A stretch of 39,848 nucleotides of DNA, from contig NC_068981.1 in the NCBI RefSeq assembly GCF_001194135.2, positions 198,317,336-198,357,183 of the forward strand. Direction: 5' to 3'. Source of the DNA: Octopus bimaculoides (Eukaryota). The translations under genes and the position numbers were made by a program. The stretch's first letter is position 1. The number at the start of each line of letters is the position of its first letter. The notes under the pieces are model-generated. The model had not been told where the DNA came from, made no database searches, and worked only from the letters and a program-made list of their open reading frames with translations. Positions 17,207-26,571 of this stretch are shown here, one piece after another.

Positions 17207-17399
17207 ATATGGAAATATTAAACAGAGCGGTAGTAGTGGGAGTACTGAAGTAGTGGTGGTGGTGGTGGTGGGGTCCTGAAAACACCTACCAAAGCTGACT
17301 TTAAAGCACAATACATTTGTTGGAGGTGCCAGATTGCATCCAAGCATCCGAGCCAGTATGGAAAACAAACGGTAACAGAATATGCTGCTGATGAAGATA

Positions 17400-18900
17400 T
17401 GTATATCATCATCATCATCATTGATAGTTTGTTTGCCATGTCTTGGAGAGTTTGACAGGAGCTGATAAGGCCACACCAGCTTCCGTTGTCTGCTCTGGCA
17501 TGATTTCCACAGCGGGAAGCCCTTCTTAATGCCAACCACTTTACAGAGTGTAGATGGTGCTCTTTAAATGGCACCAGCGCCAGTGTCAACTCTGCTGTGG
17601 TGGATGGGTCTTCTGGAGGTGCCAGATATCTCAGCCCTTTCTTATCTCCTCCATAAGGCTCAGTGTCTTGAGACTGAACTTCAATATTTTGTCCCATATC
17701 TTTCTGGGTCTCCCTCTTTCACGAGTTCCATCCACTTCAAGTGATCGATACCTCTTTATGCAACTGTCCTCACCCATGTGCATCACACGACCAAACCAGT
17801 ACATTCTTCTCTCTTGCATGTTGCATCTAATTCCTCTTATGCCCAGCTTTTCTCTCAATGCACTAGCACATCAAGCAGAGCATACTAGCTTCATTCCTCT
17901 CTAAACTTTGTGCACCTTCTGCATTCAGGGTCCATGTCTTACTCCTATGTAGCATTGCCATTATTATACATGCATCATACAGTCTTCCTTTCACTCAGAG
18001 AGAGAGAGAGAGAGAGAGAGAGAGAGAGAGAGAGAGAGAGAGAGAGAGAGAGAGAGAGAGAGAGAGAGAGAGAGAGAGAGAGAGAGAGAGAGTCCTTTGG
18101 TTACCAACACAGGTAAAAGCTTTCTGAATTTTCTCCACCCTATTCTTATTCTAGCAATTACACTTTCTGTGCATCCTCCCCCACAGCTAATTAGGTTCCC
18201 TTAGGTAGCAGAAATTATCCACTACCTCTAAAGAGCCTCCAGAACATTTGAGAAAATCAATTTCCTGAATATCTGTAGTTTTTATGGTTCCTGTGCATCT
18301 TCCACAGACAAACATTACCTTCTCAGATAATTTTCTTGTTATTCCACTGCACCTCTTGTGTGTCCATAGCTTGCACTATCTACATTGTATAGAATTCCTG
18401 CCTACACCTTTCCTATATACTGAGAAGGACCATTTACCTGATGGGAGAAGGATCCTCTTTGTTTACTTAAGTTAACCTTAAGGCCCTTTGCTAAGTTAAC
18501 CTTAAGATCACCCTTAGGTTCCAGGTTTTTCTTCCACAACTGGAATTTCTTTTCTAGTTCTGTTACAGAATCTGCCAGATATTTTAAGCATCTCAGTGGT
18601 GACTCCTGATGGACCAGGCGGCTCTCCCTGTCTTCATATCCTTATGAGGGGAGATTCCCTTTATTCAATTCATTCCCCACATTTAAGAGCCTTTCATAGT
18701 AGGACTTCCACACCTCTTCCCTTTCAGAGTCATTGACTGCAAGCATACCATTATCCAAACGTACAAATCTCTTTTTCACCACATCTTGATTCTCTCTGAC
18801 ACATTGTTTGGCAATCTGGATAAACCTCAAGTCTCTGATCTTCATGCTCTAAGACATTGGCACACTTCTTCCTTTCTGCTTCTGCCCCTGGCTAGAGAAA
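17400..18900 (-). mobile_element. RTE LINE fragments (RT, C-terminus, tail)
   Basis: LREKLGIRGIRCNMQERRMYWFGRVMHM..CIKRYRSLEVDGTRERGRPRKIW; upstream RT and linker pieces to about 18900. Confidence 0.85.
17997..18092. repeat. (AG)48 microsatellite inside RTE coding sequence
   Basis: Directly visible; RTE sequence continues on both sides. Confidence 0.97.
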
Positions 18901-18959
18901 CCTATTGCCTATTTATACATACATACACACATACATGCATGCATACATATATATCACCA

Positions 18960-19680
18960 CCACCACCATCATCATTTAATGCTAGCTTTACATGCTGGCA
19001 TGGGTTAGACAGTTTGACTGGAACTAGTAAGTTAGAGAACTGCACCAAATTCCAGTCTGATTTCACATGGTTTCTACAATTGGACACCCTTCCTAACACC
19101 AACCACTCCGAGAGTGTAATGAGTACTTTTTACGTCTCACTGGCATGGGTGCCATTTACATGACACCAGCAATGGCCACCACTAAGATTTCATGGGTGAC
19201 ATTCACATAGCACTGGCAATGGTCACAACTACAGTTTCACTTGGTTTGATAAGTTTTCTCAAGCACAGCATATCACCAAAGGTCTCAGTCTCTTGTCATC
19301 ATCTCCATGAGGCCCAACATCAAAGGTTATGCTTCACCACTTCGTCCCTTGCCTCTGAGAGGCCCCCAACATTTGAAGATCAGGCTACTAGTTACGGCCA
19401 CAATTACGATTTCACCTGATTTGACAAGTTTTCTCAAGCACAGCATATCACCAAAGGTCTCAGTCACTTGTCTTTGGCTCCATGAAGCCTGACATTTGAA
19501 GATCCTGCCTCACCGCTTCGTCCCATGGCTTCTTGGGTCTACATCTTCCACAGGTTCCCTGCACAGTTAAAGATTGGCACTTCTTTACACAGCTCTCCTC
19601 TTCCATACGCATCACATGACCATACCAGCCACATTCCTCTCTCTTGCATATTTGCATAGATTGTTTGAAGTGGTGCACCA
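18960..19680 (-). mobile_element. RTE LINE 3' end with internally duplicated UTR segment
   Basis: (CAT)n tail; 'ttgataagttttctcaagcacagcatatcaccaaaggtctcagtc' at about 19247 and 19421; WYGHVMRMEEESCVKKC. Confidence 0.85.
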
Positions 19681-19879
19681 GTTTTATAAATCAAGAAAAA
19701 GGAAGTAGTCAGAATTATGGACAATCTGGTAAGAAAACAGAAAGCTTTCTTTCTTCCAATTCTTTTTTTTACCTTTTATATTTCTCTAACTGAGCCTCCA
19801 AAAATTTAACACACACACACACACACACATATACTTACACACATACTTACATACACACATATAATTATGCACACTTCAT

Positions 19880-20755
19880 CAACATCATCATCATCATTTA
19901 ACGTCCGCTTTCCATGCTGGCATGGGTTGGACGGTTTGACTGAGGACTGGTGAGCCAGATAACTGCACTAGGCTCCAATCTGATCTGGTAGAGTTTCTAC
20001 AGCTGGATGCCCTTCCTAATGCCAACCACTCCAAGAGTGTAGTGGGTGCTTTTACATGCCACCAGCATGAGGGCCAGTCAGGCGGTACTGGCAACGGCCA
20101 TGCTCAAATGCTGTTTTCCATGTATCACCGGCACAAGTGCCAGTAAGGTGACGCTAGTAACGATCATGCTCAAATGGTGCTTTTTACGTGCCACCGGCAC
20201 GGGGGTCACACAGTGGACTTGGCCACGATCATGCTCGGATGATGCTCTTAGCACTCCACTAGCATGGATACCTGTCATGCGGTGCTGTCATCAAATTTGA
20301 TTCCGATTTCACTTTCCTCAACCGCTAGGGTGTGACACTTTTTCACACAGCTATCCTCATCCATTCTCGCCACATGACCATACCAGTGCAGTCATCTCTC
20401 TTGCACACCACATCTGATGCTTCTTAGGTCCAACTTTTCTCTCAAGGTACTTACACTCTGTCTAGTATGCACACTAACATTATACATCCAGTGGAGCATA
20501 CTGGCTTCATTTCCTGCAAGCTTACGCATGTCCTCAGCAGTCACGGCCCATTTCACTGCCATGTAGCATGGCTGTTCATACACATGCGTCATACAGTCTG
20601 CCTTTTACTCTGAGAGAGAGACCCTTTGTCACCAGCAGAAGTAGGAGCTCTCTAAACTTTGCCCAGGCTACTCTTATTCTAGCAACTACACTTTCAGCGC
20701 ACCCTCCCCGGCTACTAACTTGGTCACCTAGGTAACGGAAGCTATCAAAATTCTC
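19880..20755 (-). mobile_element. 5'-truncated RTE LINE with internal deletion
   Basis: DSFRYLGDQVSSRGGCAESVVARIRVAWAKFRELL; tail at 19880. Confidence 0.88.
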
Positions 20756-24809: not shown

Positions 24810-25040
24810 ATGTTGTGTCCAAACACCAGCTTAATAATGACAAACCTATTTAACTTAATAATAGATCACCCAGGCCCATATATTAATGGGAATGGCCATT
24901 GCAAAATCGGCATCATGGAGGGAGCCAAGGTTTTTAAGGACTATACTAAAGCTAGCACGATAAATAGTCATAAAGAAGTTTTTCCTAAATGTGTCCACTT
25001 CAAGCGCAACTGGAAAATTGGATTACCCCGTTTAAGCCGT
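24810..25040 (+). mobile_element. Second, divergent Penelope-like endonuclease C-terminal relic
   Basis: HPGPYINGNGHCKIGIMEGAKVFK...INSHKEVFPKCVHFKRN aligns with NPGPYINGTSCCKLCIAERARILK...STEIFRLCLHFRKF at about 9590-9730. Confidence 0.6.
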
Positions 25041-25922
25041 TTCGGGTTGGAAGCGTTGTTTTAGCTTCTGATACAGGGGAGACAACCCATCTTCATTACC
25101 GTTTTTATATGTTAAGACTTAAATCTCGATTTCTGAGCGTTTCCTCACGTCGGAAATTTTAATTTTTTGACTTTGTGCAGAGTCATATGAGCTGTCCACA
25201 AGGTTTTAGCTTTGTGGATACGAAACGTTTGGTAACTCTATGTCCAAAATTAAAATTTTTGTTATGATAATTACTGCTCTATCCTTGAGTGTGTGCTTCT
25301 TATCTGGTATATGTTTTATTGACTATCTATGATGATATTGGCCAAATCATCTACGTGAATGGTGACAGCAATTTCTTGTATATGTTTTTAGTAGAAAGTG
25401 GGTTATACATCTTTAGATTGTATTCCTGACTTTCTACTAAAAAATTTGAAGAAATAGACGGAACGCTGAACTCCAGACTAAACAACTCAAACAACATTTA
25501 TTTAGGTGATAAACATACATATCTTTAGTTATACATCTTTAGAGGTGAGAATAACGAGCTGTCGAGTATAAGACCGAAAGATGTAGAGACAGCTTTAAAC
25601 ACACGTCCATGCTCAATCGCTGGCCAGCGAGAAAGAGAATGAATTGAGCGGGAAACGCTTGCTTTATTAATTCTACGCATGCGTAAGACTACGCATGCGC
25701 AGGTGTTACTACATGTTCAATTATAATCTAAGTGAAAAACTTTCAATACTCATAATTCAATTTTGGCACCTTTTTTCAACTCAGTCAACAACACGTGTTT
25801 CTGATGGTATGGAATAAGGACACTGAATGATTATGAGGGTCATTTCTATTTTGCAGAATATCATTTTGGTGAATTCCAAGAATATCAACACAAAACAACA
25901 AACAACAAATACAACAACCAAC

Positions 25923-26150
25923 CTTTACTATGTACGTGTCTTGAGGATAAACCACAAAGTTTACAACTTTGATTTGGCTTGAATTCTGATCTGAGTAGTT
26001 TTTCACTGCTTCAAACATAGTTCCAGGTAGCTCTTCAATAGGGTACCTCAATTTTCCACCTCCTAATATAGGAAATGCAAGACTTTTTGCTCCCATTCTC
26101 TCAGCAGTTTCCAGACAAGTGGTTATTATTTGAGTCAAGTTTGCCAGAAT
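25923..26150 (-). CDS. Macrodomain exon (PARP14 macro2/3-like), copy B (phase 0-0, 228 nt)
   Basis: ttttttttag|ATT and AAG|gttggt; ILANLTQIITTCLETAERMGAKSLAFPILGGGKLRYPIEELPGTMFEAVKNYSDQNSSQIKVVNFVVYPQDTYIVK (SxAFP-xGxG motif). Confidence 0.88.
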
Positions 26151-26320
26151 CTAAAAAAAAATAATTGTTTTGGTAATTGATAATGAACATTTTATTACAG
26201 GAAGGAATCATTAAGTTGTAATTAATATATTCTTTGATTAACACATTCCACACAGAATTTGTTGTTTCAAACAGAAATGTTTTACAGATTCGAATAGCAT
26301 TAAACAACTTCTAGTGATTA

Positions 26321-26392
26321 TTGGATTAACAGATCATGTGGTCATTGGATTAACACAGATCATGTGGTCATTGGATTAACACAGATCATGTG
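26321..26392. repeat. 26-bp tandem repeat, about 3 copies
   Basis: attggattaa(ca)cagatcatgtggtc. Confidence 0.9.
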
Positions 26393-26571
26393 ATAGCAGG
26401 AAGTCTGGCCGAGTGAAGACTTGGATGCCATGAATGAAAAGAGTAATGTTCTAAGATTTGGTGTAATTCAANNNNNNNNNNNNNNNNNNNNNNNNNNNNN
26501 NNNNNNNNNNNNNNNNNNNNNNNNNNNNNNNNNNNNNNNNNNNNNNNNNNNNNNNNNNNNNNNNNNNNNNN

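Follow-up and report, generated by a model that had tools for sequence, protein, structure and literature searches.

Vertebrate macro-PARPs (PARP9, PARP14 and PARP15) place a macro domain upstream of a C-terminal PARP catalytic domain. Their octopus relatives, which NCBI names PARP14-like or PARP15-like, carry macro domains and a PARP catalytic domain together with the PARP14-type RRM domains that they share with the vertebrate proteins. The gene considered here follows the same order of macro and catalytic domains, but it has a single macro domain type and, in place of the vertebrate WWE region, short Lys/Ser-rich linker exons. It lies in a stretch of 39,848 bp from Octopus bimaculoides (GCA_001194135.2, chromosome CM046601.1, approximately 198.317–198.357 Mb), referred to as the window, which is byte-identical to the assembly. 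The window holds two tandem copies of the gene, A and B, and in copy B a block carrying macro and linker exons is written on the minus strand, with plus-strand catalytic exons on either side. Comparison with copy A and with Octopus sinensis indicates that this orientation is very probably a scaffolding misorientation, an artefact of the assembly rather than a biological inversion. In the animal, macro exon 2 is most likely followed by linkers a and b and then by the three catalytic exons, with every exon on the plus strand, an arrangement that O. sinensis shows.

The apparent inversion fits a well-described class of Hi-C scaffolding error, and the inversion as such adds no biological knowledge. 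Short contigs are harder to orient with Hi-C because they make fewer contacts, as described for HiC-Hiker, and contigs below 15 kb were excluded from the 3D-DNA benchmark in that study (PMC7672694). The local orientation errors reported there likewise concern a short piece of short-read assembly that is edged by gaps of default size, set in the right neighbourhood and reversed relative to both neighbours, with gene prediction disturbed as a result. The known errors were analysed for 3D-DNA, whereas the octopus assembly was made with HiRise and curated in Juicebox. In addition, cases of the HiC-Hiker type are judged against a reference from the same species, whereas the error in copy B is read from a paralog and a sister species.

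Collinearity of the block with copy A and O. sinensis

The reference for the argument is the O. sinensis PARP14/15-like gene at locus L001 (CM016859.1:211.08 Mb, protein P0002), the sole locus with intron-level homology to the block. Its eight exons lie on one strand of gap-free sequence in assembly GCA_006345805.1, which the mention of Li et al. (2020) in PMC10700109 gives as a PacBio and Hi-C assembly. The exon set and lengths are those of the octopus block and its flanks (55- and 66-nt linkers, three catalytic exons), and its intron DNA shows 82–92% homology to the block. The two species differ in that L001 is a single copy, whereas O. bimaculoides has the tandem copies A and B, about 96% alike, and intron sizes differ as well. 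Exons were placed by tblastn with Octopus PARP14/15-like reference proteins, and loci were compared by blastn of the window against L001; protein-level comparison of the window with itself was dominated by interspersed repeats, which are abundant across its sequence. The coordinates are collected in Table 1.

Domain content varies among the octopus paralogs. Two loci are catalytic-only, L003 in O. bimaculoides (gappy upstream) and L004 in O. vulgaris, and one, L005 in O. sinensis (paralog P0012 at CM016859.1:211567643-211591303), carries macro exons 1–2 preceded by the N-terminal exon. No linker or catalytic exons were found within 10 kb downstream of L005 in gap-free sequence, showing that macro-only units are real in this family. 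Since the collinear fused arrangement is not universal among PARP14/15-like genes, the case for flipping the block rests on L001. Macro exon 1 of L001 has an apparent 1-nt frameshift relative to the paralogs, at approximately 8999–9041, just past …CKNVF. The shift could be a genuine lesion or could stem from an indel error in the long reads, and it may explain why the NCBI model P0002 begins only within macro exon 2, at an internal Met.

The block is edged by two gaps of exactly 100 N, at 17107–17206 and 26472–26571. These are the only runs of that length among the nine in the window; the others measure 10, 30, 127, 137, 282, 545 and 873 N. A first-pass annotation of the window, made from its letters alone, had reported both gaps, three minus-strand exons inside the block and a collinear order with copy A, and all of its coordinates were checked and are correct. 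The three exons are real, each with an AG acceptor and a GT donor. Macro exon 2 is 83–84% identical to Octopus macro proteins by tblastn, the linker exons a and b equal their O. sinensis counterparts in length (for linker a, the exon at L001 12928–12982), and the block's 321 bp ahead of macro exon 2 are intronic.

Read in reverse, the block aligns over its full length with L001 in seven ordered minus-strand matches, introns included, which run from 26462 down to 17207 as L001 runs from 9556 up to 17594. Both neighbours align forward: copy A at 6568–16670 with 13902–24335, and the 3' half of B at 26572–27003 with 18332–18796 and at 28265–28580 with 23265–23581. Copy A and the block also have in common the three intron landmarks named by the first-pass annotation, which are non-repeat, ordered and all on the minus strand in the block. 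The third of these pairs A 11248–11297 with block 17256–17207 at 50 of 50 bases, making the left end of the block the exact reverse complement of a sequence that ends 130 bp ahead of catalytic exon 1 in A (which starts at 11428).

The contig that follows the block begins at 26572, a position that had been equated with A 12027. The two copies match on the plus strand from there (12027–12458 against 26572–27003, 415 of 432 bases), and the assignment can be refined: as catalytic exon 2 of A spans 11948–12125, position 26572 falls in the middle of that exon and the contig opens with its second half. If the block is flipped, its end lies at L001 17594 and the next contig at 18332, with 737 bp between them (17595–18331). 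The corresponding distance in copy A is 729 bp (11298–12026). Two independent rulers thus agree with the gap of about 730 bp, including catalytic exon 1, that had been proposed for the flipped junction; what falls in the absent interval is exactly catalytic exon 1 plus the first half of exon 2.

The block and the 3' contig of B are each 96–100% identical to A and at most 87% identical to the other loci compared (L001, L003 and L004), which identifies both as parts of the sister copy of A. Homology between A and the block starts exactly at A 11248, where homology between A and L001 also starts, and the block ends 50 identical bases further on. At the other side, the 3' contig begins at the equivalent of A 12027, and its first mismatch with A comes 3 bp in. 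Contig ends that coincide with the edges of an identical stretch would be the signature of a collapsed repeat.

In the half of catalytic exon 2 that both copies retain (12027–12125 against 26572–26670), all six nucleotide differences replace an amino acid, in five codons, and polarisation by O. sinensis places four of the codon changes on the B lineage. The B-specific codons read His, Ala, Glu and Arg where A has Asp, Glu, Lys and Lys. In the neighbouring 333 bp of intron the copies differ at 11 positions. These small numbers fit either rapid evolution or relaxed constraint.

Table 1. Position, strand and basis of the features of copies A and B in the window and of the O. sinensis reference exons (coordinates of the latter within L001)
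Feature	Coordinates	Strand	Basis or correspondence
Block, 5'-middle part of PARP14-like paralog B, opposite to flanks	17207–26471 (9,265 bp)	-	blastn against L001
B macro exon 2, C-terminal third of macro domain, 228 nt, AG...GT	25923–26150	-	tblastn, splice sites, Pfam, P0026
B linker exon a, 55 nt, AG...GT	24464–24518	-	tblastn, splice sites; part of P0026
B linker exon b, 66 nt, AG...GT	22744–22809	-	tblastn, splice sites; part of P0026
Block terminus, onset of segment apparently identical in A and B	17207–17256	-	50/50 identical to A 11248–11297
100-N placeholder gap, scaffolder join; if block flipped, must contain B 5' exons including macro exon 1	17107–17206		
100-N placeholder gap; if block flipped, stands for about 730 bp with catalytic exon 1 plus first half of exon 2	26472–26571		
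Intronic 10-N gap standing for a 6-bp overlap (TTGTTT) between contig ends	22562–22571		alignment with A 7900–8140
B catalytic exon 2, second half (…NEVHGLWHGTAAG…), GT donor after 26670	26572–26670	+	
B catalytic exon 3, including TAA stop	28294–28571	+	100% identical to P0001 C-terminus
A intron landmark 1	6887–6962	+	block 22983–22901, minus, 73/76 aligned bases
A intron landmark 2	7939–8128	+	block 22635–22429, minus, across 10-N gap; 129/132 in unique part
A catalytic exon 1, model for the part that B lacks	11428–11561	+	tblastn, splice sites
A catalytic exon 2	11948–12125	+	tblastn, splice sites
127-N gap, predicted site of A catalytic exon 3	15958–16084		A 15954 = L001 22920, A 16085 = L001 23674
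L001 N-terminal exon	8395–8538		
L001 macro exon 1	8814–8999		
L001 macro exon 2	9869–10096		
L001 linker a	12928–12984		
L001 linker b	14400–14474		
L001 catalytic exon 1	17729–17866		
L001 catalytic exon 2	18238–18432		
L001 catalytic exon 3	23293–23559		

Reading frame and gene models of copy B

Joining the exons in the flipped order gives a 939-nt frame, made of 228, 55 and 66 nt from the block, 134 and 178 nt in which copy A fills the gap, and 278 nt from the last exon. The frame stays open until the TAA at 28569–28571, and the splice sites of all exons are intact. The virtual product matches the PARP catalytic domain PF00644 at 56 bits (cutoff 26.7), with residues 142–188 of the match contributed by the copy A filler. 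NCBI model P0001, which contains B's own exons, carries a precomputed PF00644 assignment. The His of the LWHGT motif and the Tyr of the GVYFA motif are both visible in the exons of B.

The macro domain is less complete. The block matches PF01661 only at profile positions 77–113 of 118, with a score of 17.6 bits (cutoff 22), and so does not hold a complete macro domain. Macro exon 1, the N-terminal exon and any further upstream exons are absent from the window, even at E<=10, and no macro exon of B type was found in the window upstream of A. Macro exon 1 of B presumably lies unassembled, in which case the domain is incomplete in the assembly while in the gene itself it need not be. The first-pass annotation had held that flipping the block restores one intact macro-PARP gene. 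Collinearity, exon phases and the open frame bear this out for the assembled exons, but macro exon 1, the 5' exons and about 730 bp at the junction are unassembled. An intact B gene is a prediction, one that holds only if an unplaced scaffold or the left 100-N gap accounts for the whole 5' part of B.

Existing gene models of the two copies reflect the break. The 2015 model P0026 (UniProt A0A0L8FMB3) starts at an internal Met of macro exon 2, continues through both linkers and ends in an intron read-through. Its exons are exactly the three of the block, and it is truncated at both ends, as expected of a gene cut by the ends of a scaffold, suggesting that the block was a separate scaffold in the first version of the assembly. 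The 2015 model for copy A, P0023 (A0A0L8FWB5), consists of catalytic exons 1–2 and a read-through. The NCBI model P0001 (PARP14-like, O. bimaculoides) is a chimera of A and B that skips the block (window 11454–12178, 26574–26670 and 28294–28571): catalytic exons 1–2 of A and an intron read-through (…GEYIIIIIIIIHPPSILA) are joined to half of exon 2 and exon 3 of B. The model carries the LWHGT motif twice because exon 2 of A is fused to the half exon 2 of B. The O. sinensis model P0002 joins the tail of macro exon 2, both linkers and all catalytic exons.

The assembly lacks parts of copy A as well. By O. sinensis coordinates its linker b is expected in the 545-N gap at 6964–7508. The 127-N gap at the predicted site of its catalytic exon 3 is about 630 bp smaller than the O. 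sinensis interval, and by this estimate copy A may have lost the exon instead of having it hidden in the gap.

One gap inside the block can be closed. On the plus strand the 10-N gap reads ...TATTTGTTT before the ten Ns and TTGTTTCAAC... after them, with the hexamer ttgttt on both sides. Copy A carries the hexamer once, which means that the two contig ends overlap by exactly 6 bp, as the first-pass annotation had suspected. Comparison of suffix and prefix puts the chance of an exact overlap of at least 6 bp at ~3e-4. Dropping one hexamer should close the gap. No reading frame is affected, since the gap is intronic, with linker b and catalytic exon 1 on either side of the intron.

Origin of the reversed orientation

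The chromosome-scale O. bimaculoides assembly (v2) combined new Hi-C data with the published 2015 shotgun assembly by means of HiRise and Juicebox, with no gap closing (PMC9068888), and it comprises 713,915 contigs (PMC10700109). Between a scaffolding error and a real inversion, a choice that the first-pass annotation had left undecided, this treatment of an old shotgun assembly strongly favours the error. The block has fixed-size gaps of 100 N on both sides, it is short, and the whole piece is reversed while both flanks are forward. As a 9,265-bp piece between two 100-N joins, it was very probably oriented by Hi-C alone, which at this size is close to a guess.

The arrangement probably arose as follows. 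The tandem copies are about 96–100% identical around catalytic exons 1–2, perhaps homogenised there by gene conversion, and the short-read assembler would have built the near-identical 0.78-kb segment (A 11248–12029) once, within the contig of A. The flanking contigs of B would then have ended at the edges of the segment: the block stops after its first 50 bp, and the 3' contig opens 3 bp short of the position at which A and B first differ. The resulting 9.3-kb fragment would have had no read-level link to its neighbours. HiRise and Juicebox would have set it between A and the 3' half of B with default 100-N gaps, Hi-C contacts being unable to orient a fragment of this size.

Several observations weigh against a misorientation. 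Protein database searches found no protein that joins the macro or linker exons of B to its catalytic exons. The contig ends at the two 100-N gaps do not overlap in either orientation, and window 16671–17106, to the left of the left gap, matches O. sinensis in repeats only, favouring neither orientation. A 'default gap of 100 bp' is named in the squid section of the assembly supplement, where HiRise and Juicebox were also used (PMC9068888); it is documented for the squid assembly, for the octopus not explicitly. Finally, macro-only and catalytic-only paralogs in gap-free assemblies mean that rearranged copies are not exotic in this family.

The arrangement deposited in the assembly would be correct if a real, lineage-specific inversion of 9 kb had split the macro and linker exons of B from its catalytic exons, leaving a broken gene or separate macro-only and PARP-only units. 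A recent inversion that parts the macro from the ADP-ribosyltransferase module of a newly duplicated PARP14-like gene would suit a cluster that is tandemly duplicated and rich in transposable elements, in a family whose macro-only and catalytic-only members appear in long-read assemblies, and the four B-lineage replacements in half of catalytic exon 2 could mean relaxed constraint. Both breakpoints would then happen to lie in unassembled sequence, where gaps that may stand for stretches of any length could hide them. These supposed breakpoints coincide exactly, however, with gaps of scaffolder type around a piece too short for Hi-C orientation. In homologous coordinates only 729–737 bp separate the ends of the block and of the B contig, which border the stretch identical to A as in a collapsed repeat, and splice sites and frames are all intact. 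A real inversion is accordingly very improbable, both as a split of the gene and as a true record of the deposited orientation.

It is also very unlikely that the block, though misoriented, has been given the wrong 3' partner, either by a swap across the identical 0.78-kb segment or through a third, unassembled and near-identical copy. In a swap, the block would belong upstream of the catalytic exons of A, and the upstream introns of A to B. Short reads cannot phase about 780 bp of identical sequence, the last 50 bp of the block are 100% identical to A, Hi-C placement is approximate, and 0.14 Gb of the assembly is unplaced (PMC9068888). Against this, the contig of A at 7509–13471 runs continuously from its second landmark to its catalytic exons, the block and the B 3' contig have the same 96–98% identity to A, and there is no trace within the window of a further copy of these exons. 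Either version leaves the conclusion of a wrong orientation unchanged. That A and B are divergent haplotypes of one locus scaffolded side by side, with one gene per haplotype and the block a fragment of the alternative haplotype, is hardly credible, even though redundantly assembled split haplotypes were a common artefact in the same authors' squid assembly (PMC9068888) and the assembled exon sets of A and B are partly complementary. Identity is 96–98% in unique intron but only 89% (165/185) in the 3' flank, the transposable-element content between common landmarks is 3.1 kb against 5.2 kb, and intron 2 measures 1.6 kb in B and at least 3.8 kb in A. Heterozygosity in O. bimaculoides is low, and the divergence of A from B is far above it. 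Haplotype duplication was rejected on this divergence and on the structural differences between the copies.

Surroundings of the copies and meaning for the family

An insertion of about 9.4 kb occupies 28582–37991, some 10–25 bp past the stop codon of B. It is edged by direct repeats of about 315 bp (28582–28893 and 37671–37991, approximately 84–88% identical) and contains an open reading frame (ORF) with DUF7083 (30879–31772, plus strand) as well as internal inverted duplications. It looks like an old element of long-terminal-repeat type, and the 3' flank homologous to O. sinensis resumes after it at approximately 37996–38280. The window further holds a reverse-transcriptase ORF (RVT_1) at 38329–38988 and a PHD-finger-like ORF at 35572–36102, both on the minus strand. 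The repeat family of the PHD-like ORF recurs at 10019–10799, 15049–15855, 18083–18575 and 20313–20748 and sits in introns of copies A and B and of the O. sinensis gene.

At the upstream end of the window, a diverged macro-type exon lies at approximately 925–1251 on the plus strand. An upstream NCBI model of 547 residues with RRM and macro domains ends at about 5879, inside a 190-residue ORF (5307–5876, plus strand). This ORF has no Pfam match and looks Helitron/PIF1-like. The 547-residue model may represent a gene fused with a transposon.

Were the inversion real after all, copy B would show gene fission caught in the act in a fast-evolving and probably immune-related family, and such events could help account for the many macro-only and PARP-only genes listed in octopus genomes. 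With a scaffolding misorientation as the preferred reading, the value of the finding is mainly practical and lies in the correction of annotation and assembly. The reference O. bimaculoides assembly misrepresents the PARP14-like paralog B, and its NCBI annotation yields the chimeric P0001. In this assembly, no reliance should be placed on the orientation of short segments that lie between two gaps of 100 N. Pieces like the block can mislead calls of small inversions relative to O. vulgaris or O. sinensis, and they can likewise mislead counts of macro-only, PARP-only and fused genes in cephalopods.

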